A stretch of DNA of 64,000 nucleotides from the sequence record ON190025.1, one strand, 5' to 3'. Positions 1,142-21,728 of this stretch are shown here, piece after piece. Below the pieces are notes generated by a model that saw nothing but the letters and a program-made list of their open reading frames with translations, was not told the DNA's origin and ran no database searches. Numbering within the stretch: position 1 is the first letter of the stretch; each line of letters opens with the position of its first letter. The position numbers and the translations under genes were made by a program.

Positions 1142-2836
1142 GTTATTCTCTCATTGAGTACGTTTTATCATTTATTTATCATGTATAAAAAAAGCTCCCG
1201 AAGGAGCTTTTTATTTAAGTAGTTTTTCTAGACTTTCTAGACGTTTTTCAAGTTCTTCGCGTTTTCGTTTCTCTTCTTTAATACCTTCGATCAACAAACC
1301 AACCATGTTCCCGTATGAAACAGAATACATGTTGTTTTGCTCGACAACTGCTTCTGGTAGAACTTCAATAACTTCTTGAGCAATCACACCAGTTTGACGA
1401 GGCCCGTCAATATCAGTACGCTCATACGTATAACCATTCAGGCTGTCAATTTTTTCAAGTGGGTTTAGAATGCGCTTGATATCAGTTTTTATTCTTATAT
1501 CAGAATACGCAGTAATATTACCCGGCGCGGTAAAATTACCACCCGAAGATAATGTAAACGTCTTCCGACTGCCCCACGACTGTGCATTAGTATACATGTA
1601 AAGCGTATCATCAGAACCTAAGTGTAAGTTTTCACTCGTATTGCCAGCCGAAACAGCATTTGCCGCAGTCGTCTCGCCCGATGCAATTACAGTGTTACCA
1701 CCTGACGATACAATCAAGTTCGTACCGTTCACACCACCATCTAATGCTTTAATCGACGCTCCAGGGTGTGAACCTGCTTTTAGTTTCAATTCACCTGTCA
1801 TCGTATCGCCAGACTTATACACATATCTTGAATTCGATTCTGATTCTGTGTAATAACGACCGTCGTGAGTATGAGAATCGTTTTTAACCGCGACGCTTAA
1901 AGTCACATTCGAACTACCGTCAATTGAAACTGAACCACTTGCATCACCGTTCAACGTCAGCGTACGAGAAGTTGTCCATCGGTCTGCATTTGGGTGATAA
2001 TCGTCCATGAAAATGCGCTGTGTACTACTCCAAGAAGTTGTCAAGCCACGACGGAAATACAGCTCGTTATCAGAATAATTGTTACTACCACCAAGTAATT
2101 GCCATGCTTGATAACCAGAATCCCAGCCGTTCACAGATAACGCAGAATACCAATTCGAAAAACTGCTCGGTCTGTCTAAGTTTGTAAACTGTGCAGATAC
2201 TGATCGAGCCACAAGTGTATTCGGTGTAATCGGTGTATCGCGAGTATCGTCAACAACAATCCACGTATGCGTGTGTGAATCATTTGCTACAGATGCAGTT
2301 AACGTAACGTTCGAACTACCGTCAATAGATACTGAACCGCTCAAATCACCGCTCAATGTCAATGTTCGTGCATTAGTCCATTTGTCTGCATTTGGGTGAT
2401 AGGCATCAGTAAAGATCTGTGACCAAGAACCCCACGTACCGTTATTTTGATTACGAACAAACCAATTGTTAGTTCGCCAGTCGGATGCTAATTGAGTTTT
2501 CCACGATGCACTATAAGATTGTGTCAATACTGCATGGTCTTGTCCTATCGGAGTTCCATTCGCCGATGATTGAGCGTAACCGAAAGAATACCCACTATCA
2601 TCACCATAAGTGTCAAGGTCGGTTATTATGACACTTTGCAATCTAGGGGTTTTTAAAACCCCTGTCATTGTATCACCAGCTTTTTGTACGTATCTAGTAT
2701 CGTGAGTATGCGAGTCGTCTGCTACTGTGACGTTTAATGTAACATCCGAGCTACCATCCCATGAGACGCTACCACTCGCGTCGCCGCTTAAATTCAACGT
2801 ACGAGCGGTAGTCCATTTGTCTGCATTTGGGTGATA
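468..2836. repeat. Four 26 bp near-identical repeats in tail fibre genes (468, 1974, 2376, 2811)
   Basis: GTCCATTTGTCTGCATTTGGGTGATA at 468, 2376 and 2811; 2-mismatch copy at 1974; encodes YHPNADKWT. Confidence 0.9.
1186..1212 (-). terminator. Rho-independent terminator, C(UUCG)G loop
   Basis: Minus strand AGCTCC-TTCG-GGAGCT followed by a T run. Confidence 0.85.
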
Positions 2837-8057: not shown

Positions 8058-8084
8058 AAAAAAGGGCGCTATTTGCGCCCTTTT
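8058..8084 (-). terminator. Rho-independent terminator
   Basis: GGGCGC/GCGCCC stem flanked by A6 and T4. Confidence 0.75.
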
Positions 8085-8593
8085 GTTTTTTGTTTCTTTG
8101 CTTTTCGTTTAGCCCGTCTAAGTTCTTTTCGTTTAGCGATTTTATCTGCTCTTCGAACTGCGTCGTAATCAGCAGCACAAGACGCAGCAAACGCATCAGG
8201 TTTGAACACGGGCTCTTGACCAACATATCCCAATATAGTACCTTTAGCTTCGTTATAGGCAACGTGAGATTTGTGTGTAGGGTCAGGGTTGATGTCAACG
8301 TGAACTTCAAAGCCTCTAGTACCGCACATTGGCTTAACCATTAGTGCAGTTTCACCCGCTTTGTATACTTCATTCATCAATCGACTTCTGATACCATCTT
8401 TACATGATAAGTATGCAGGTTCAGTCTCAACTGCTTTAAACACTTGAGCACCTTTACTACCTTCAAGATGAATTATGATCACAGTCGCGTAACTAATCAT
8501 GTCACTTTTACGCTTACTATCACACCCAACGTATATTGTGCTATTTGGATGACTGTTATTGATAGCTGTTTCTATCGCTTCCCAATCGAACAT
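8069..8593 (-). CDS. RNase H-fold protein, YkuK/DUF458-like
   Basis: IYVGCDS, YATVIIIH, EVHVDIN and KPDAFAASCAAD motifs; basic C-terminal tail; GAGG SD before ATG 8593. Confidence 0.75.
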   Translation of the reverse strand: MFDWEAIETAINNSHPNSTIYVGCDSKRKSDMISYATVIIIHLEGSKGAQVFKAVETEPAYLSCKDGIRSRLMNEVYKAGETALMVKPMCGTRGFEVHVDINPDPTHKSHVAYNEAKGTILGYVGQEPVFKPDAFAASCAADYDAVRRADKIAKRKELRRAKRKAKKQKTKGRK

Positions 8594-8642: not shown

Positions 8643-10079
8643 TTAAAAGCTGTAGCGTTCGACGCCTACAGTTTTCATCATGATCTTGACTGGCTCAAGC
8701 TCACCACTCAACAGTGAAGTCAAGATAGATGGGCTACAACCAGATACCAGTGCAGTGCCCGCTTCGCCAGCTTTAACCGGAACGTTGCCAAGACGACCAC
8801 GAATGTTCCAAAAGACCAGTTGTGGCATTTCATAACCAGCACGTGCGTACTTGGCTTTGATTGCATCGAAGTTCGCAGGTTCACCGCGACCGTACCATCC
8901 ACCACCAGTGTTTGCTTGATCGAATTCCATGTCACTCATGATAAGCAACTTGGTTGGCATATCTTCTTGTGAAAGATTTGCACGCTTCGCACGTTCTAAC
9001 AGAACATCAAAGCACTTACCGATGTTCGTGCTCATGTCTTCGCCTGAACGATTCATGTTATCAAGACGCTCTTTCAATGAAGAGCCGCGCAACTGGTGGA
9101 AGTGCGGGTCGCTTGAGAACGAAATGAACTGATCTTTGAAGATGCCTTCATTGCGTTCAGCAACATAAATCCCAAGAGACATTGCAACTTGCTTACAAGT
9201 CACACCTGAATGGTCTGTACCTGCGTTAATTGGCGTGCTCATAGAGCCAGACACGTCAACAACAGGGATGATGCGTTCATCAGAACCTTCCATGTAGTTT
9301 GGCAGAGCTTTCCATTGCTCGTTCGCTACAGACGCATTACCGTGACTAACGCTCTTAACGACATCGTATGGGAACAGTGCGCCAGCGTTGATCTTCGCTT
9401 CACCTTTTTGAAGTGACTCGATGTAGCTTGTGTAACGAGCTGAAGCGTTACGACCGAATGCTTGTTGATAACGAGCAGACGCTACAGAAGGCAACTTACC
9501 GAAGTCGATTGCATCCCATTTTTGCGCACACATCTTCTGCTCAACAGTGTCAGACAGAAGCGACAGAATCTTACGCCACTGCTTCGCAGTTACGCCAAGA
9601 GACTTGATTGTGCGCTTGAACACATGACCGTTTTTGCTGTTTTCACGTGGGAACCACTTCGCAGCAAGACCATTCTTGTCATTGACAATTGCGTTCGACC
9701 ACATTGTAATCGCATCTTTTTCAAGACGTGTACCGAAAGCAGAAATCAAGTCATCGTAACGACCTAGTTCTGGAATTTTCGACATTACAGCACGAGCTAC
9801 GTCAGGCTGTTCATTACAAAGTTTAGTGAATAGTGTACGGAAAGTACCACGTTCACCCGCACCACCTCGAACGTCACGAGACCACAAAAGAATGCGAGTC
9901 GCTAGTTCTGGGTTTTCTGCAAACGCACGACCGAACAGCGTTTTAGACTGATCGTTGCCACGCATAGCAGCAATACCGAAGAACAAGTTTAGACACTCGT
10001 TACCTGAAGTGCTGTGAGTAACTGCACCGTTTGCTGTGCGTGAATCGTTTGTTTGCATTGCGTTCATAAATACTGACAT
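8643..10079 (-). CDS. DUF2828-family protein (helical TROVE/Ro60-like N-terminal region plus C-terminal vWA)
   Basis: TANGAVTHSTSGNECLNLFF, RDVRGGAGER, LAAKWFPRE, KINAGALFPY; MIDAS DVSGSM, SDMEFD, VFWNIR. The TROVE relationship is inferred. Confidence 0.85.
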   Translation of the reverse strand: MSVFMNAMQTNDSRTANGAVTHSTSGNECLNLFFGIAAMRGNDQSKTLFGRAFAENPELATRILLWSRDVRGGAGERGTFRTLFTKLCNEQPDVARAVMSKIPELGRYDDLISAFGTRLEKDAITMWSNAIVNDKNGLAAKWFPRENSKNGHVFKRTIKSLGVTAKQWRKILSLLSDTVEQKMCAQKWDAIDFGKLPSVASARYQQAFGRNASARYTSYIESLQKGEAKINAGALFPYDVVKSVSHGNASVANEQWKALPNYMEGSDERIIPVVDVSGSMSTPINAGTDHSGVTCKQVAMSLGIYVAERNEGIFKDQFISFSSDPHFHQLRGSSLKERLDNMNRSGEDMSTNIGKCFDVLLERAKRANLSQEDMPTKLLIMSDMEFDQANTGGGWYGRGEPANFDAIKAKYARAGYEMPQLVFWNIRGRLGNVPVKAGEAGTALVSGCSPSILTSLLSGELEPVKIMMKTVGVERYSF

Positions 10080-11586: not shown

Positions 11587-11958
11587 ATGAACGACGAAAA
11601 AATTATTTCTTTCGAACAGTATCTAAATGAGGGATGGTTTGAAAGGCAATGGTCGCGATACAAAGCAGGTGCTGACTCGCGTAGTATTAAGAAACTGGCC
11701 AAGATGCATACAAAGCTACTGCATATTGAGCAAAAAGCCAAGCAAAACAAATATCGTTATGAAGCAGTTCGATACAATTACGAACACATCAAGATGAATG
11801 TTTTAGATGCTAAGAAGCTCATCAATAAGTTGAGATATAAGAAAGGTATTAGCGATGAGCTAATAATGGCAATGGATAAGTTAGATGTCGAGCTAGATCG
11901 TCTCAACGACTTTGCGGTTGAAGGTCTTCATCAGCTAATGATTCAACACAAGTTATAA
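11587..11958 (+). CDS. Late protein, possible capsid-internal protein
   Basis: CTAAATA upstream; N-terminus IISFEQYLNE/G resembles a T4 capsid-targeting sequence. Confidence 0.65.
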   Translation: MNDEKIISFEQYLNEGWFERQWSRYKAGADSRSIKKLAKMHTKLLHIEQKAKQNKYRYEAVRYNYEHIKMNVLDAKKLINKLRYKKGISDELIMAMDKLDVELDRLNDFAVEGLHQLMIQHKL

Positions 11959-11961
11959 AAT

Positions 11962-11986
11962 AAAAGCCCCATTTAGGGGCTTTTTT
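11962..11986. terminator. Bidirectional terminator between convergent genes
   Basis: AAAA-GCCCC-ATTTA-GGGGC-TTTTTT. Confidence 0.8.
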
Positions 11987-11987
11987 G

Positions 11988-12200
11988 TTAGTATGAATGG
12001 CGCAACTTTTTTTCGATCATTCGATCTACAATCGTGGAGTACATAAGATGTTCTTTGTAATATTTCTCATCAACTCGGTTACATTGAAAGTCTCGAAAAT
12101 CTTTGCGCAGACGTGCAATAAATTTATTCAGTGTTTTGCGCACTTTGCAAACTTCAGACAATTCCATGCTTTTTAGTGTTTCTTCAGAAAGTATTTCCAT
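11988..12200 (-). CDS. Hypothetical protein
   Basis: 70 aa, GAGG SD. Confidence 0.65.
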   Translation of the reverse strand: MEILSEETLKSMELSEVCKVRKTLNKFIARLRKDFRDFQCNRVDEKYYKEHLMYSTIVDRMIEKKLRHSY

Positions 12201-12229
12201 GATTGCTCACCTCTTAGTTAATAGAATAC

Positions 12230-12274
12230 GGGAGACACAGGAATCGAACCCATTGCCTTGACCACATATCTCCC
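12230..12274 (-). ncRNA. 45 nt tRNA-like minihelix (acceptor plus T arm only)
   Basis: GGGAGAT...ATGGG-TTCGATT-CCTGT-GTCTCCC; no anticodon arm, no CCA. Confidence 0.55.
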
Positions 12275-12298
12275 ACTGAGAAGTTACGCCAATTCAGA

Positions 12299-12532
12299 TT
12301 AATGCGCTATGCTTTGTAAACGGCGCATACGCTCACGCTGCGATAACTCATCGAGGCTTGGTTTCTTAACCTCTTCGTCTTTCTCTGCGTCTTCAGTTTC
12401 TGCTTCCTTTTTAATCTTTTCAGCATCGGGACCAATGTTCTTCCAAAGAGGTGCATTGCGCCAATTTTCATTATACCCATTGCCAGAACCACGCCCTTCA
12501 CGAGCATGAGACTTTTGATGAATGTTCTTCAT
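12299..12532 (-). CDS. Hypothetical protein
   Basis: 77 aa, start overlaps upstream stop. Confidence 0.65.
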   Translation of the reverse strand: MKNIHQKSHAREGRGSGNGYNENWRNAPLWKNIGPDAEKIKKEAETEDAEKDEEVKKPSLDELSQRERMRRLQSIAH

Positions 12533-12828: not shown

Positions 12829-12853
12829 AAAAAAACCTGCTCAAGGCAGGTTT
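12829..12853 (-). terminator. Terminator ending the tRNA/ncRNA operon
   Basis: AAACCTGC-CTTGA-GCAGGTTT then T run. Confidence 0.85.
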
Positions 12854-12868
12854 AGATGTGCAATACAC

Positions 12869-13113
12869 AGACATTCGAGAAGTGTTTTATCGTCTTTCCT
12901 TAAATCTCATTTGACTATAACGATGTTTCTCATCGGAAAAATACTCATGTTTCGGCATGAGTCCTATTTCGTTTGACAGTACGAACACCGTCTTAATGGT
13001 CATTTCCTACCACGAGAATGCGACAGGCTCACGTCATCACTGAGAAAGCAGCTAGTGCGCCTCATTACTATTAAAGTTTGCTTTGATTTTGTAATGATTG
13101 CTGTACAATGTCT
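12869..13113 (-). ncRNA. ~245 nt structured RNA closed by the motif helix
   Basis: AGACATT-GT-ACAGCAA...AATGTCT; internal hairpins TCATTAC/GTAATGA, ACTCATG/CATGAGT, CGATG/CATCG, TTCGT/ACGAA; no ORF in the track. Confidence 0.75.
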
Positions 13114-13124
13114 TATTGCGAATT

Positions 13125-13213
13125 TGGCGGAAGCACTGGGAGTCGAACCCAGAGAACGCTATTAACGTCCGACACCTTAGCAGGGTGCTGTCATACCTTT
13201 AGACCATGCTTCC
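13125..13213 (-). tRNA. tRNA-Ser(GCT)
   Basis: Cloverleaf, long variable arm, CCA. Confidence 0.95.
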
Positions 13214-14857: not shown

Positions 14858-15085
14858 AGACAATACCGAAGTGTTTTTTCGTCTTTTGCATAAATCGGAG
14901 TTGACTAGCTTATTGATTCTCAACAAGCAAATATCGTCTGTTTCAGCGACGCGCCTATCTGACTATTTCTAGACAGAGAGAATCTTTCCTTTCAAGCTGC
15001 GCCTAAGCAAGCTCAGGTTAAAATCAGCCCAGGTTAAGATCATCACTTCTTTTAAGTAATTTCAATTGTTTGCTGTATATTGTCT
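14858..15085 (-). ncRNA. ~228 nt structured RNA closed by the motif helix, paralogous to 12869-13113
   Basis: AGACAAT-AT-ACAGCAA...ATTGTCT; shares AAGACGAWAAAACACTTC (17/18) and AGTGATGA with the 12869 RNA. Confidence 0.75.
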
Positions 15086-15298: not shown

Positions 15299-15373
15299 TG
15301 GTGGACACGCAGGGAGTCGAACCCTATCTTCCTCATTGCAAGTGAGGCGCTTTCCCAATTAAGCTAACGGCCC
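15299..15373 (-). tRNA. tRNA-Ala(TGC), irregular acceptor stem
   Basis: G3.U70 present; inner acceptor pairs mismatched or bulged. Confidence 0.85.
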
Positions 15374-15696: not shown

Positions 15697-15808
15697 GAGT
15701 GTTATTACTAGCGTCGTCCAGACCAGTGATACCAACACTGAAAGGGAATCGAACCCTAAACATTTCTTTCCGATAAGAATATTAGTAAATTGTTTGCTGA
15801 AAACACTC
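15697..15808 (-). ncRNA. YrlA-like circularly permuted tRNA mimic (candidate phage Y RNA)
   Basis: GAGTGT-TT-TCAGCAA...AGGG-TTCGATT-CCCT (T arm), CAGTG-TTGGTAT-CACTG (closed acceptor), GTC-TGGAC-GAC (D arm)...ACACTC. Confidence 0.75.
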
Positions 15809-15817
15809 TTCGGTATT

Positions 15818-15891
15818 TGGCTGGGGATAACAGATTCGAACTGATACCAACGCATTCAAAGTACGTTATGCTGCCTTTACACCAATCCCCA
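15818..15891 (-). tRNA. tRNA-Gln(TTG)
   Basis: U1-A72, G73, CCA. Confidence 0.95.
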
Positions 15892-16218: not shown

Positions 16219-16276
16219 AGTAATCCTTTTTGCTTTTTCCAAATAAAAGTTTTGTATTGTTTGCTGTAAGATTACT
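16219..16276 (-). ncRNA. 58 nt RNA consisting mainly of the motif
   Basis: AGTAATC-TT-ACAGCAA...GCAAAAAG-GATTACT. Confidence 0.7.
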
Positions 16277-16970: not shown

Positions 16971-16980
16971 ATTATTCAAC

Positions 16981-17067
16981 AGCTTGCGTTCTTTGGTCTG
17001 TTTATCGCTGTCTGAACTGAGTTCGCCGAGCGATCAATAGATTAAGTTAAATTGCAGTATGCAAGCT
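16981..17067 (-). ncRNA. 87 nt motif-closed RNA
   Basis: AGCTTGC-AT-ACTGCAA...ATCGCT/AGCGAT hairpin...AAAGAAC-GCAAGCT. Confidence 0.7.
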
Positions 17068-17072
17068 AAAAC

Positions 17073-17708: not shown

Positions 17709-17726
17709 ATTAAATTTTGTAAACTT

Positions 17727-17857
17727 CTTTTCTTCATTGTACATGATGTTTATATCGTTGTAAACATCTTTTTTTGAAAAACTTTTCATTCGTTTTTGAA
17801 TGATGTTTCGCTTTTCTTCATTGTACATGATGTTTATATCGTTGTAAACATCTTTTT
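17727..17857 (-). promoter_or_regulatory. Exact 47 bp direct repeat (17727-17773, 17811-17857), each a sigma70-type promoter
   Basis: TTTACA-17 nt-TACAAT in each copy, with inverted repeat GATGTTTA...TAAACATC over the -35. Confidence 0.8.
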
Positions 17858-18941: not shown

Positions 18942-19057
18942 TGGTAGTCGGGGCTGGATTCGAACCAGCGACCACGTGCTTAACAGGCAATTGAAGGAGT
19001 GCTGGAGCGATACTTGTCAGTATCATTCTTCGTGCTCTACCACTGAGCTACCCGACT
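18942..19057 (-). ncRNA. tRNA-shaped RNA, anticodon loop replaced by a motif-bearing insert (CCA present)
   Basis: AGTCGGG/CCCGACT-A-CCA, normal D and T arms; insert GATACT-GACA-AGTATC-GCT-CCAGCAC. Confidence 0.75.
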
Positions 19058-19093
19058 ATGAATTATTTAACTTTGAATTTCAAATTTCGATAT

Positions 19094-19354
19094 TCAAAGT
19101 TTCGTTTGTCTTTTTTTACTGTAATACGTATCCCAATCAATAGAAACAGGACAGTTCTTACTACCCACACGAGATAAGAAAACGTCGTGAGTGTCTTTGT
19201 AAGCTTCTCTGAGAGACTTTACTTGTTTCTCATGATGAGTTATGTACTCAGCACACGCTTTGTTGTACTCAGCTTTAGAGAAGCGTTCATCGCCCGTGAA
19301 ATTACCGTTTAGATACGGTCGAATAACACGAACACGTTCTTTAGACCATCCCAT
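19094..19354 (-). CDS. Hypothetical protein
   Basis: 86 aa ORF. Confidence 0.65.
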   Translation of the reverse strand: MGWSKERVRVIRPYLNGNFTGDERFSKAEYNKACAEYITHHEKQVKSLREAYKDTHDVFLSRVGSKNCPVSIDWDTYYSKKRQTKL

Positions 19355-19378
19355 ACTAAAACTATTTTCAATTTATTT

Positions 19379-19456
19379 TGGTGACCCCAACAGGACTCGA
19401 ACCTGTAACCTACCGATTATGAGTCGGTTGCTCTAACCAAGTTGAGCTATAGGGCC
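19379..19456 (-). tRNA. tRNA(CAT), most like Ile2 (lysidine type)
   Basis: GGCCC acceptor and GACTCATAATC arm resemble bacterial tRNA-Ile2. Confidence 0.85.
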
Positions 19457-19457
19457 A

Positions 19458-19826
19458 TTATTTCTCTAGAAATCGACCTACTTTAGCAGCGAAGATGTTT
19501 GCTTCTTCTGTAATACGAGCAGTCGATTTAATTTGATGAAATGCGTCTTGTTGATGCAGCAAATCGAGCTTATCTGCACATTTCATCAATTCTTTTATAG
19601 TTTGCATAATCTCAATATTATCAAACTGACTTGTATCAGGGTGATAATTTAGATTGTCTAATATCGGCAGAACTTGTTGATAGCAACCCATGCCAATGAA
19701 GTTTATCATAAGTCTATACTGCATTTCAACAGCAAATGTACAATATTTTCGAAGATTGCGCTTTACAATCTCACAACGATGCAATATACAATCAAGTTCG
19801 TCATTTATGTCATTAAACTTATTCAT
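19458..19826 (-). CDS. Hypothetical protein
   Basis: MNKFNDINDEL..., 122 aa. Confidence 0.65.
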   Translation of the reverse strand: MNKFNDINDELDCILHRCEIVKRNLRKYCTFAVEMQYRLMINFIGMGCYQQVLPILDNLNYHPDTSQFDNIEIMQTIKELMKCADKLDLLHQQDAFHQIKSTARITEEANIFAAKVGRFLEK

Positions 19827-19840
19827 AAACCCTCGAAAAT

Positions 19841-19965
19841 TGGTGGAGAGTACGGGATTTGAACCACGTGACAAAAAGATTTACCTAGTTATTAAGGTTT
19901 GCAGCATGAATGCTTGTCAGTATTCTTTAACATTCTTTTGCTCTACCAGACTGAGCTAACTCTCC
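19841..19965 (-). ncRNA. tRNA-shaped RNA with motif-bearing insert (CCA present)
   Basis: GGAGAGT/ACTCTCC-A-CCA; AAAAGA/TCTTTT stem encloses GAATACT-GACA-AGCATTC-AT-GCTGCAA. Confidence 0.75.
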
Positions 19966-19975
19966 GGAATTTGAA

Positions 19976-20088
19976 GGTGAAGTGCAGGACTCGAACCTGC
20001 GACCTCCGGCGTGCATGTGAATGCAGAATGAAATCTTATCAGACTTCGTTTTTTGGCCGGCGTTCTAACCTACTGAACTAACTTCACC
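19976..20088 (-). ncRNA. tRNA-shaped RNA with motif-bearing insert (no CCA)
   Basis: GGTGAAGT/ACTTCACC; insert AAAAAAC-GAAGTCT-GATA-AGATTTC-AT-TCTGCAT. Confidence 0.75.
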
Positions 20089-20103
20089 AATGTAAAAACA
20101 TAT

Positions 20104-20227
20104 TGAGCAGGGTGCAGGATTCGAACCTGCGTCACGATCTTGGAAATGATATGCTAAATTGATTGCAGAATACAAACTTAACAGCTTGCGTTTATGCTAC
20201 GTGTGCTAGCCACTACACCAACCCTGC
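20104..20227 (-). ncRNA. tRNA-shaped RNA with motif-bearing insert (no CCA; acceptor extends to 17 bp)
   Basis: GCAGGGT/ACCCTGC; insert ATAAAC-GCAAGCT-GTTA-AGTTTGT-AT-TCTGCAA. Confidence 0.75.
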
Positions 20228-20301
20228 TCAATATGTTCTTGAGAGTGCTTGTGATTAACCACAAGCACCAAAAATCCTCTAGTTTATTTTGCCTTAGCTA
20301 A

Positions 20302-20481
20302 TCAACACAACCTGAAATCGTGCGCTTTATTTACGGGATGAATGACCCGTTCGCATATGATTAGCGCAAAAGTATGAATGCGCACCTTTTCTTCTTCAAT
20401 GTCCAAGGCAAAGAGGACGATGAATACTAGTGCGAGAAGATATACAATCAAATTGTTCACCTCGCTTGATAAGTGAGAGTA
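20302..20481 (-). CDS. Possible small membrane protein
   Basis: Hydrophobic LIVYLLALVFIVLFAL stretch after a GAGG SD; start uncertain. Confidence 0.4.
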   Translation of the reverse strand, partial: YSHLSSEVNNLIVYLLALVFIVLFALDIEEEKVRIHTFALIICERVIHPVNKAHDFRLC

Positions 20482-20484
20482 CAT

Positions 20485-20607
20485 TGGTCGAGTGTAACGG
20501 AATCGAACCGTTCCCACGATCTCCCTATGATATGCGTAAATTGGTTGCTGAATATAATCATGTCTGATTACAGTATGCTACGTGTGCTGCCACTACACCA
20601 ACACTCG
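20485..20607 (-). ncRNA. tRNA-shaped RNA with motif-bearing insert (CCA; acceptor extends to 21 bp); paralogue of 20104
   Basis: CGAGTGT/ACACTCG-A-CCA; insert GTAATC-AGACAT-GATTAT-AT-TCAGCAA. Confidence 0.75.
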
Positions 20608-20622
20608 ACCAATATACTCTCG

Positions 20623-20774: not shown

Positions 20775-20879
20775 ACTCATCTTCAGAGAAGAGGCAGAAA
20801 CGATGAGTTTAGTCTGCTTAATCAATATTGTTCATCTTCAATAAGAGGCGAGAACGATGAACTTAGCTCGCTTAATCAA
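20775..20879 (-). repeat. Tandem ~50 nt repeats folding as covarying pseudoknots
   Basis: GCGAG/CTCGC vs GCAGA/TCTGC and GTTCATC/GATGAAC vs ACTCATC/GATGAGT. Confidence 0.75.
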
Positions 20880-20887
20880 CTGTGTTA

Positions 20888-21010
20888 ATCTTAACATCAT
20901 TTCAGTGTAAGTCAACAACTTTTTTCAAATATTTCATCGAGTTGAAAGTTTGTGTTCTGTCTCTCGACTCGATGAAATACATTCTACATGCTTTTCAGAA
21001 TAAGTCAACA
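20888..21010 (-). promoter_or_regulatory. Two tandem early promoters driving the tRNA/ncRNA cluster
   Basis: AAAAAGTTG-TTGACT-16 nt-TAAGAT (20888-20915) and AAAAAGTTG-TTGACT-16 nt-TAGAAT (20981-21008). Confidence 0.8.
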
Positions 21011-21025: not shown

Positions 21026-21280
21026 TTATACTGAAAGAATGATACCGCTTTCTGTCTCACCTCGTTCAAGCGCAGCGTGCTTGATTTGAAGCTGAGATAC
21101 AGCTTGTTGAAGCTCAGTGATAGCTTTATCGTAAAGTTTGTTGTTCTCTTTAAGTAAAGCAATCTGATCGGTCTGCATACCGATGATATACGTCAATAAT
21201 ACAACGTTCTCTTCAGTAGTTAGAGTTTCGGGAGCTTCATTGTACTTCTTTAATACTGCTTCAGTAGATAAATCAGTCAT
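21026..21280 (-). CDS. Coiled-coil hypothetical protein
   Basis: MTDLSTEAVLKK..., 84 aa, overlaps the 57B stop. Confidence 0.7.
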   Translation of the reverse strand: MTDLSTEAVLKKYNEAPETLTTEENVVLLTYIIGMQTDQIALLKENNKLYDKAITELQQAVSQLQIKHAALERGETESGIILSV

Positions 21281-21728
21281 TACTATCAACCCAATTTAAA
21301 TCAAGTGGTTCAAGATATTCATCAACAAGCCGAACTTCAGCGTTGACGGGCATAGGTGTGATCGCGTCGTCATAAGACAACGTAACGTGAGGGGTATAGT
21401 CAGGGTAGTCGTGAGTACCACCGATAGAGATAAGATCATCGTGACGTTCTACAAGTTCTGGACATACCATCTTAGCAACAACTGCATATTTGCCGTCTTG
21501 CGTTTTCCAACAGTCGATATGTTCAACAGTAGCAACGAAAGTGGTATCGACAACAGGTACATCAATTTGCTTACGACTATAAAGCACAGTCACGTGAAAT
21601 TTATCTGGTTCTAACGGATTTTTTAGACGAAGCGTTTTCTGCAATCGAACTAACTCTTGCTTACTCGCCTCGTCTAATCTGATACCAACGTAAGTTCCCT
21701 GACTTTCAAGGAACTTAGATAGTTTCAT
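21273..21728 (-). CDS. 57B: 2H-phosphoesterase, T4 gp57B homologue
   Basis: Two HxT motifs (FHVTVLYS, PHVTLSY); position beside 57A. Confidence 0.85.
   Translation of the reverse strand: MKLSKFLESQGTYVGIRLDEASKQELVRLQKTLRLKNPLEPDKFHVTVLYSRKQIDVPVVDTTFVATVEHIDCWKTQDGKYAVVAKMVCPELVERHDDLISIGGTHDYPDYTPHVTLSYDDAITPMPVNAEVRLVDEYLEPLDLNWVDSND

Follow-up and report, generated by a model that had tools for sequence, protein, structure and literature searches.

What is the function of an RNA that has the arms of a tRNA and, where the anticodon loop should be, something else? This question is raised by five elements, E1-E5, in a stretch of 64 kilobases (kb; bases 62001-126000) of Vibrio phage PVA23, a T4-related phage of the KVP40 type (Schizotequatrovirus). 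Throughout, this stretch is called the window, and its coordinates are used unless another locus is named; loci of related phages and metagenomic contigs carry L numbers. We arrived at the reading, to which we give roughly two chances in three, that E1-E5 are functional non-coding RNAs composed of a tRNA body in which the recognition module of a phage Ro-like protein takes the place of the anticodon loop. They would most likely be the RNA subunits of a phage particle of the Ro/Y-RNA type. Ro60 and Y RNAs are conserved from bacteria to humans, and the role of the tRNA-like domain of bacterial Y RNAs is still open. On our reading, E1-E5 are a new variant, absent from Rfam, of this tRNA-mimic theme.

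tRNA bodies with a module at the anticodon position

The tRNA cluster of the window lies on the minus strand, running from 19456 down to 13125, and comprises 28 tRNAs detected by ARAGORN; E1-E5 are all on the same strand, at the upstream end of the cluster. ARAGORN called none of the five. The Rfam tRNA model (RF00005; family threshold, 29 bits) matched E1 (18945-19057), E2 (19844-19965) and E3 (19976-20087) with 49.8, 50.1 and 56.3 bits, respectively, leaving 44-49 extra bases of each unaligned within the anticodon loop. E4 (20104-20227) and E5 (20485-20607), which are paralogues of each other, gave no Rfam tRNA match even at E < 1. Their consensus fold, computed with RNAalifold from 13 distinct orthologues, has a 7-base-pair (bp) acceptor stem, a 4-bp D stem, a 5-bp T stem and a canonical GGUUCGAAUCC-type T loop, with double changes at four acceptor pairs and four T-stem pairs.

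The anticodon arm of a tRNA, with its 5-bp stem, loop of 7 nucleotides (nt), U33 and purine 37, is not present in any of the five. The loop is replaced by 44-60 nt, and the 5-bp stem is kept only in E2 and E3, being absent from E1, E4 and E5. Each insert begins with an A-rich stretch, continues with a hairpin and then reads CCAGCAC, GCTGCAA, TCTGCAT, TCTGCAA or TCAGCAA in E1 to E5, respectively. CCA is encoded only by E1, E2 and E5. In the E4/E5 class, three flanking bases on each side pair and covary (UGA/UCA, AGU/ACU, GGU/ACC); these flanks extend the terminal stem to 10 bp, so that the CCA of E5 is probably not single-stranded. E3 has an additional G-1:C73 pair, as in tRNA-His, and since its orthologue in phage D479 swaps this pair to C-1:G73, the resulting 8-bp acceptor stem seems to be selected.

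We aligned the insert hairpins of the five elements with those of their orthologues, obtaining 24 distinct copies that represent five paralogues and 11 related phages (KVP40, VH7D, V09, VH1_2019, nt-1, VS1, 6E35.1a, D491s, F86, 1.081.O and D479). The copies align in a gapless register of 3+8+6+8+7+2 nt, without a single indel. The module so defined is an imperfect helix of eight positions with a 6-nt loop of consensus UGNNAA, followed by N-C-N-G-C-A-(A); its single-stranded part 3′ of the helix is U-N-C-N-G-C-A-A, the UNCNGCAA motif. Six positions are invariant, namely the loop G, the final U of the helix and the C, G, C and A of the motif (N-C-N-G-C-A-N). Pairing within the helix amounts to 84%, as against 60% in column shuffles (0 of 500 reached 84%) and 28-42% when the partner strand was slid. 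Changes on both sides were seen at seven of the eight pairs, one of which occurs as AU, CG, GC, UA and UG, and at pair 2 a mismatch is conserved among 20 of the 24 copies. Pairing of the motif with an upstream GUAGC is predicted in E4/E5 only, without covariation and without a counterpart in E1-E3. We rejected the idea that the module is a mobile mini-insertion, since its five helices have different sequences and each covaries among orthologues.

A covariance model of the 34 module columns (R1) was run on the whole window with filters off. It gave exactly five matches, E1-E5, at 35-44 bits, with the next best at 13.5 bits, R1 having been trained on these very copies and their orthologues. It also detected copies outside the training set, in an Aeromonas phage and in metagenomic contigs. 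The loci of related phages that we examined contained 2-6 R1 matches each, and all of the significant ones fell in or beside tRNA-shaped elements.

Between PVA23 and KVP40, E1 and E5 are 100% identical and E2 and E3 about 95% identical, compared with 77-90% for neighbouring open reading frames (ORFs) and 86-95% for intergenic DNA. The identity of E1 is complete also in V09, and that of E5 also in V09 and VH1. Conservation of the elements is thus at the level of genuine tRNAs and above that of the neighbouring ORFs, and the complete identity of E1 and E5 next to ORFs of 77-90% means that they are not decaying pseudogenes. The second hairpin of E2 covaries among orthologues (ACCU/AGGU, ACUU/AAGU, CAUU/AAUG), and the E1-type orthologue of Aeromonas phage phiWae14 keeps the same GCCUGUUAAGC mini-hairpin. 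Among the loci examined, a phage has between 2 and at least 5 copies, as fits partly redundant paralogues; recent duplication of the phage's own tRNAs was rejected, no close paralogue having been found. These comparisons of sequence support purifying selection on E1-E5, with their structure held by compensatory changes. A search for related loci with the small ORF 19458-19826 returned only two near-identical phages and was of no use for covariation.

The five elements had been proposed in an original prediction made from the letters of the DNA, and its description of their anatomy held well. The coordinates, the intact acceptor, D and T arms, the order of the insert with its five motif sequences and the encoded CCA in three elements all proved correct. 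Its "2 nt" between hairpin and motif are in the right place; they are not a separate spacer, being the closing A-U pair and the conserved mismatch of the helix. The prediction that the elements are no decayed pseudo-tRNAs agrees with the identity of E1 and E5 and the absence of module indels. Where random decay of arms and motif would have spoken against it, the E4/E5 arms covary and the motif C, G, C and A are invariant; covariation across related phages, which it had proposed to look for, was seen in the module helix, the E4/E5 arms, their flanks and the second hairpin of E2.

Open forms of the module and their linkage to a Ro-like gene

The module is found not only as a closed hairpin. We scanned for an open form, in which the motif follows a strand complementary to one 30-260 nt further downstream; this loose scan has a background of about 7 matches per shuffled window, and only perfect, conserved cases were counted. 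Three spacer RNAs of this kind, F1-F3, were found on the minus strand of the tRNA cluster. They have a closing pair, a mismatch or wobble and at least six pairs, followed by U-ACNGCAA, and their 5′ and 3′ ends are brought together by the helix. E4 shares the 13 nt AACGCAAGCTGTT with the spacer RNA at 16972-17072, at whose 3′ end they lie.

RNAs with the topology of YrlA and the same motif are present in L015 (881-1012) and L056 (12150-12290). The L015 RNA consists of a terminal stem, T arm, closed acceptor stem and D arm, and aligns end to end with Rfam YrlA at 32 bits, which is below threshold. ACAGCAA follows the 5′ strand of its terminal stem, and the motif of the L056 RNA is at the same place; this is where YrlA carries its presumed Ro60 site (PMC4201824). 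In the L056 RNA (plus strand), the loop that closes the acceptor stem reads GACCAAUUCAAAC, that is, discriminator, CCA and spacer, as though two tRNA-form genes in tandem had given rise, at their junction, to this permuted gene. Sequence comparison thus supports the existence of the module in a closed tRNA form and in a circularly permuted open form, represented in the window by F1-F3.

The gene to whose homologues the module is linked is 8643-10079. Its product matches DUF2828 and DUF7788 in Pfam, belongs to a PHROG family named "RNA-binding protein" and has a predicted architecture of a HEAT-repeat ring and a vWA domain with an intact DxSxS MIDAS motif, whose D275, S277 and S279 are invariant in the homologue alignment. 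An AlphaFold2 model built with 28 homologues was moderately confident (predicted local distance difference test score, 75). The top three Foldseek matches of this model were Deinococcus radiodurans Rsr (2nvo) and chains A and B of the Ro60 of phage phiLo (9l5y), with E-values of 2e-7 to 1e-6 and template-modelling scores of 0.43-0.53; the remaining Foldseek matches in the Protein Data Bank (PDB) covered the vWA domain alone. The model therefore supports a Ro60-like fold. Homologues were found in 711 phage records and, in a metagenome search, more than 7,400 times. Some mycobacteriophage homologues bear the annotation "Ro-like RNA binding protein", and in Felix O1-type phages the gene abuts the tRNA cluster.

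In the window, E1-E5 are 8.9-10.5 kb and F3 is 4.8 kb from the Ro-like gene, on the same strand; in relatives the distance is 0.02-2.7 kb. Closed copies within tRNA-shaped RNAs lie 0.5-2.7 kb from the gene, again on its strand, in phiWae14, L056 and L074. Aeromonas phage phiWae14, whose Ro-like protein is 47% identical to that of the window, has two such RNAs 2.5 kb downstream of the gene (R1, 36 and 34.5 bits), and L056 has two tRNA-form RNAs and its YrlA-topology RNA within 0.9 kb after the gene. On the gene strand of the 1 kb downstream of Ro-like genes, the density of the open form is 0.79/kb, as compared with 0.043/kb elsewhere, an approximately 18-fold enrichment (61 matches against 3.4 expected; Poisson P about 1e-53). 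Open forms occur in 42 of 78 Ro-like loci, a fraction that overstates the independent observations because many of these IMG/VR loci are related to each other; their median distance from the stop codon is 239 nt, and the sequence of the helix takes more than 12 different forms among them. When one Ro-like locus with open forms was scanned with the whole of Rfam, no family was found at the open-form site.

Linkage was seen also when the protein was not used for retrieval. A search of IMG/VR with a DNA pattern of the closed module plus a GGTTCGA T loop yielded 78 stretches, of which 37 scored at least 27 bits with R1 and 16, short as these stretches are, carry a Ro-like gene. Where an R1 match and a Ro-like gene were both present, they were on the same strand in 8 of 8 stretches. 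The Ro-like start codon of L125 comes directly after one RNA of the tRNA form and three of the open form. In some phages, RNAs of the tRNA form, the open form and the YrlA topology are all found next to the gene. Taken together, the genomic data support a tight, same-strand linkage of the module to homologues of the Ro-like gene across many phages. They likewise support a single RNA family, defined by the module and associated with DUF2828 Ro-like genes, in which the module appears on three bodies: a plain Y-like RNA, a permuted tRNA-like RNA of YrlA topology and the unpermuted tRNA of E1-E5.

Table 1. Features of the window discussed in the text; aa, amino acids
Feature	Coordinates	Strand	Description
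Ro-like protein gene	8643..10079	-	478 aa; same strand as, and downstream of, E1-E5 and F1-F3
RNaseH_like gene (PF04308)	8069..8593	-	Directly downstream of the Ro-like gene; Pfam match
E1	18942..19057	-	7-bp acceptor stem, D arm, T arm, discriminator A, encoded CCA; insert of short stem CACG/CGUG, module and second mini-hairpin UGC-CUGUUAA-GCA with 7-nt loop
E2	19841..19965	-	Anticodon stem AAAGA/UCUUU, module, second hairpin, discriminator A, encoded CCA; 49-nt insert in Rfam tRNA alignment
E3	19976..20088	-	Anticodon stem CCGGC/GCCGG, module, G-1:C73, no CCA; 44-nt insert in Rfam tRNA alignment
E4	20104..20230 (with flanks)	-	No anticodon stem; 10-bp terminal stem with UGA/UCA flanks; no CCA; consensus fold and covariation
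E5	20485..20610 (with flanks)	-	Paralogue of E4; terminal stem lengthened by GGU/ACC, encoded CCA probably paired
E1 module	18997..19030	-	AAUGAUAC-UGACAA-GUAUCGCU-CCAGCAC; R1 39.2 bits
E2 module	19897..19930	-	AAGAAUAC-UGACAA-GCAUUCAU-GCUGCAA; R1 41.4 bits
E3 module	20019..20052	-	ACGAAGUC-UGAUAA-GAUUUCAU-UCUGCAU; R1 43.5 bits
E4 module	20161..20194	-	ACGCAAGC-UGUUAA-GUUUGUAU-UCUGCAA; R1 43.7 bits
E5 module	20543..20576	-	CUGUAAUC-AGACAU-GAUUAUAU-UCAGCAA; R1 35.1 bits
F1	16981..17067	-	Terminal helix AGCUUGCAU/ACGCAAGCU, then ACUGCAA; spacer tRNA-Tyr/tRNA-Met; internal hairpin covaries in VS1 and nt-1
F2	16219..16276	-	AGUAAUCUU-ACAGCAA...AGGAUUACU; spacer tRNA-Trp/tRNA-Asn; compensatory AGCAAUC/GAUUGCU in KVP40, VH1 and V09
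F3	14858..15085	-	AGACAAUAU-ACAGCAA...GUAUUGUCU; 228 nt; spacer tRNA-Arg/tRNA-Met; compensatory AGAUAAU/AUUAUCU in 1.081.O and GGCAAU/AUUGCC in F86
Two sigma-70-like promoter matches	20888..21008	-	Upstream of the E5-E4-E3-E2 run; consensus matches only; regional count not above shuffled expectation

Several other features were noted in the tRNA region of the window. A sequence at 15302-15373 (minus strand) matches the Rfam tRNA model with 44.9 bits and was not called by ARAGORN; it has normal length and no module, and because it directly follows tRNA-Arg, as tRNA-Pseudo-1 does in KVP40, the two probably correspond. The non-coding DNA contains direct repeats of about 45-50 nt, in two pairs at 17725-17857 and 20780-21010, and both pairs carry minus-strand sigma-70-like matches (TTTACA-17-TACAAT twice; TTGACT-16-TAGAAT and TTGACT-16-TAAGAT). 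The ORF 21273-21728 (minus strand) belongs to the anti-CBASS family Acb1 (PF23474, E 8e-46); it is labelled hypothetical here and 57B or "RNA ligase" in the records of KVP40, T4 and other phages.

Observations of this kind were made in the related loci as well. About 3.5 kb downstream of the Ro-like gene and on its strand, L016 (14890-16555) and L017 (9736-11362) have a kinase-like gene (AAA_33) and an RNA ligase gene (PF09414), which fit an RNA-repair neighbourhood. L015 contains, at about 1617-1870 (plus strand), a sequence of about 250 nt that starts with GUCCUGA and ends with a T arm, CGUGG-UUCGAUU-CCACG, and ACAGGGCGCCA, which pairs with the start; the outline is that of a transfer-messenger RNA (tmRNA), yet neither ARAGORN nor Rfam gave a match. 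In phiWae14 (L018), a tRNA-shaped RNA at 15761-15878 (plus strand), annotated as tRNA-Ala, has a second, complete T-arm-like hairpin, CCGGUUCGAAUCCGG, in an enlarged variable region and no module. The tRNA cluster that follows the Ro-like gene of the Felix O1-type phage EC6 (L019) gave sub-threshold matches to permuted tmRNA and tmRNA at 12847-13151 (plus strand), and three open-form module RNAs lie at 11755-12376 of the same locus.

A proposed Ro-like partner and the alternatives

The analogy of Ro60 and its Y RNAs (PMC4201824, PMC12135203) suggests that the Ro-like ring most likely binds at the module, with the tRNA body as a handle for factors that recognise tRNA. In the course of events that we infer from this analogy, the module RNAs would be transcribed together with the tRNA cluster and excised from the transcript by tRNA-processing enzymes. 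Binding of the module by the Ro-like ring would resemble that of a Y RNA's terminal helix by Ro60, and the tRNA body would couple the particle to tRNA-recognising factors, as a tether or a decoy, during infection. A bolder extension, which we offer tentatively and regard as rather doubtful, is that, in phages with a DUF2828 Ro-like protein, one portable module serves to place the ring on RNA bodies that can be exchanged for one another. The body of the KVP40/Aeh1 group would be a complete tRNA whose acceptor end is processed and terminates in CCA, perhaps chargeable, and the particle would enter tRNA pathways as a programmable device for tRNA surveillance or counter-defence. Such pathways could include anticodon nucleases, repair ligases, the CCA-adding enzyme, EF-Tu and stringent-response sensors.

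Several observations weigh against a Ro-type particle. At the level of the protein, Pfam TROVE does not match 8643-10079, and comparison of its sequence with the PDB, as single sequence and as profile, returned armadillo-repeat designs, with TROVE appearing only at an E-value of about 1; as the sequence link to TROVE is not significant, the assignment to Ro rests on the fold. At the level of the RNA, the canonical Ro60 motif GNCGAAN0-1G is absent, an ACGAAG in E3 of the window being not conserved, and the loop UGNNAA of the closed form, though conserved, has no counterpart in the open form. At the level of the genome, the distance of E1-E5 from the gene in the window is beyond the 4 kb used for YrlA. 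When 79 IMG/VR loci retrieved by alignment of the Ro-like protein were scanned with R1, significant matches were obtained in only two (L056 and L074), so that the tRNA form is a minority arrangement. The open-form scan is heuristic, and many of the IMG/VR loci are interrelated.

The original prediction likewise tied the elements to a Ro-like protein. Its observation that one strand of the E4 hairpin recurs as the 3′ strand of a free-standing RNA is real, and its proposal that the two are circular permutations of one site gains support from the open forms F1-F3 and the YrlA-topology RNAs of L015 and L056. The same relatives, with the same motif at the same place, favour its view of E1-E5 as the unpermuted topological equivalent of YrlA. 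It also had the RNAs present tRNA elbows or ends to nucleases, synthetases or uncharged-tRNA sensors. The E4/E5 class counts against part of this idea, its closed 10-bp terminal stem making a free CCA end unlikely. As a whole, its interpretation is partly supported.

The alternative that survives best retains functional tRNA mimics and dispenses with the Ro-like protein, so that the module would bind the RNaseH-like neighbour, a host nuclease or a tRNA-targeting defence enzyme, acting as an anticodon-arm decoy. The closed-form loop U-G-N-N-A-A on a C-G-closed stem resembles an anticodon loop one base shorter, it is conserved only in tRNA-form copies, and E1-type RNAs retain a second, 7-nt loop, CUGUUAA or AUGAUAA. 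Moreover, the PF04308 gene, possibly part of the system, follows the Ro-like gene both in the window and in L015, where the Ro-like protein is 60% identical to that of the window and the PF04308 gene (11747-12289) comes after a 68-aa ORF. In most other loci, such as L016 and L017, however, PF04308 is not beside the Ro-like gene, and the gene constantly linked to the module is the Ro-like one. Furthermore, the open forms, which have no such loop, still keep the helix and the motif. We therefore consider a mimic without Ro possible, if unlikely.

Alternatively, the modules could serve the tRNA-cluster transcript itself, as signals for its processing or regulation (entry sites for nucleases or stabilisers, for instance), and have neither a protein partner nor a role in trans. 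All copies within or beside tRNA clusters would indeed be co-transcribed with them. Against this, many phages have open-form RNAs after the Ro-like stop codon and before a terminator, in places where no tRNA is near; two such RNAs lie there in L024, and L016, which has the same layout, has no tRNA in 21 kb. Complete tRNA bodies with covarying arms also exceed what a processing signal needs, and this explanation seems to us improbable.

Another explanation is that E1-E5 are intron-containing tRNAs, the inserts of 45-60 nt being excised and the halves joined, for example by a phage RNA ligase; RNA-repair genes are present in such phages, and some annotations describe Asn, Cys or Phe tRNAs with introns. 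We removed in silico any one contiguous segment and asked for a 5-bp stem with a 7-nt loop, U33 and a purine at 37. No single excision restored this arm in E1, E4 or E5 of any orthologue, or in E3 of the window. An Asn-like arm, AAAGA-AUGUUAA-UCUUU, could be obtained from E2 in most orthologues, but it is not conserved, since 6E35/D491s have ACGUUGA as the loop and the E2-type RNA of the distant phage L056 lacks it. In addition, Rfam scans of the window gave no match to a group I intron, another ribozyme or a tmRNA family, the inserts are just 45-60 nt long, the E4/E5 class lacks an anticodon stem, and the module also occurs free-standing. Introns are thus very unlikely. Finally, decay into pseudo-tRNAs, as annotated in KVP40 and related records and as the rejection or flagging of the elements by tRNA finders might suggest (PMC3468402), is contradicted by the conservation data, with E1 and E5 identical between phages whose flanking ORFs are not, compensatory changes in all helices, no module indels and retention of the elements from Vibrio to Aeromonas phages and metagenomic contigs, and can hardly be credited.

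Given a Ro-like partner, five "pseudo-tRNAs" of a well-known phage group become candidate subunits of a Ro-type particle, and a short candidate recognition module is defined for DUF2828, a very large and uncharacterised family. The presence of this module on plain Y-like, permuted and unpermuted tRNA bodies provides a natural series that allows genetic dissection of the role of the tRNA body, in phages that can be grown on laboratory strains of Vibrio. The results also reveal a systematic gap in annotation, as module RNAs are absent from Rfam and unannotated or mislabelled in GenBank records.

Comparison with known systems

Descriptions of RNAs of the E1-E5 type were not found in Rfam 15 or in the literature searched on DUF2828, on phage Ro-like proteins and YrlA, or on the KVP40 pseudo-tRNAs. 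In the KVP40 record, the orthologues of E1, E2 and E3 are tRNA-Pseudo-3, -4 and -5, an annotation that treats them as defective tRNAs, and tRNAscan "pseudo" calls concern the same loci (PMC3468402); E4, E5 and F1-F3 are unannotated there. The survey of Chen et al. (2014) searched only genomes with annotated TROVE proteins (PMC4201824), for which reason the DUF2828 family was outside it.

Two other classes of RNA invite comparison. T4 species 1 and 2 (rnaC, rnaD) are small stable RNAs at the end of a T4-type tRNA cluster, and rnaC ends in a T-arm-like hairpin; we rejected homology to them because R1 had no match in the T4 tRNA region (L014) and no similarity to E1-E5 was seen. tmRNA, including its two-piece permuted forms, is a precedent both for the fusion of a tRNA-like domain to another RNA domain and for natural circular permutation. 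Unlike tmRNA, E1-E5 have no mRNA-like reading frame, and no tmRNA model matched in the window.

The closest parallels are with the RNAs of Ro60. YrlA and related bacterial Y RNAs, partners of Ro60 (Rsr; RF02553), resemble E1-E5 in being tRNA-like with D and T arms (PMC4201824), in lying on the same strand as the gene for a ring-shaped HEAT and vWA protein, in occurring as several paralogues per genome and in having, as candidate protein site, a helix with an adjoining conserved single-stranded motif. The YrlA topology itself is matched exactly by the RNAs of L015 and L056. E1-E5, in contrast, are unpermuted; their true 5′ and 3′ ends form an open acceptor stem, and the closed module hairpin occupies the anticodon position. 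Their motif is U-NCNGCAA, whereas that of YrlA is GNCGAAN0-1G, and the protein of the window is a DUF2828 protein, unlike the TROVE partner of YrlA. The U-N-C-N-G-C-A-A motif is thus a different motif, for a divergent protein family, from the Ro60 site. Rfam YrlA matched the window at best with 32, 20 and 20 bits, against a threshold of 69, and we rejected these weak matches as they span the T arm of one tRNA-like gene and the D arm of the next, an artefact of adjacent tRNAs about which PMC4201824 cautions. E1-E5 are therefore not YrlA RNAs by score, topology or motif, and they are not tRNAs by their anticodon arm.

The 6-nt loop of the module is as long as that of the "anticodon arm" of D. 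radiodurans Yrn1, which has a stem of 5 bp; Yrn1 also has a T-arm-like hairpin (PMC4201824). It differs from E1-E5 in that its Ro site is in the stem formed by the RNA ends and its D arm is doubtful, while the ends of E1-E5 form a tRNA-type acceptor, with CCA in E1 and E2. Thermus phage phiLo encodes a Ro60 with a TROVE domain, and its RNAs, Yrl1 and Yrl2, carry CGAA and have been described as Y RNAs of the stem-bulge-stem type rather than as tRNA-shaped RNAs (PMC12135203; PDB 9L5Y). In these respects it differs from the window. What the two phages have in common is a Ro-type ring of the phage's own with small phage RNAs adjoining its gene, and the phiLo Ro60 structure is one of the two best structural matches of 8643-10079.

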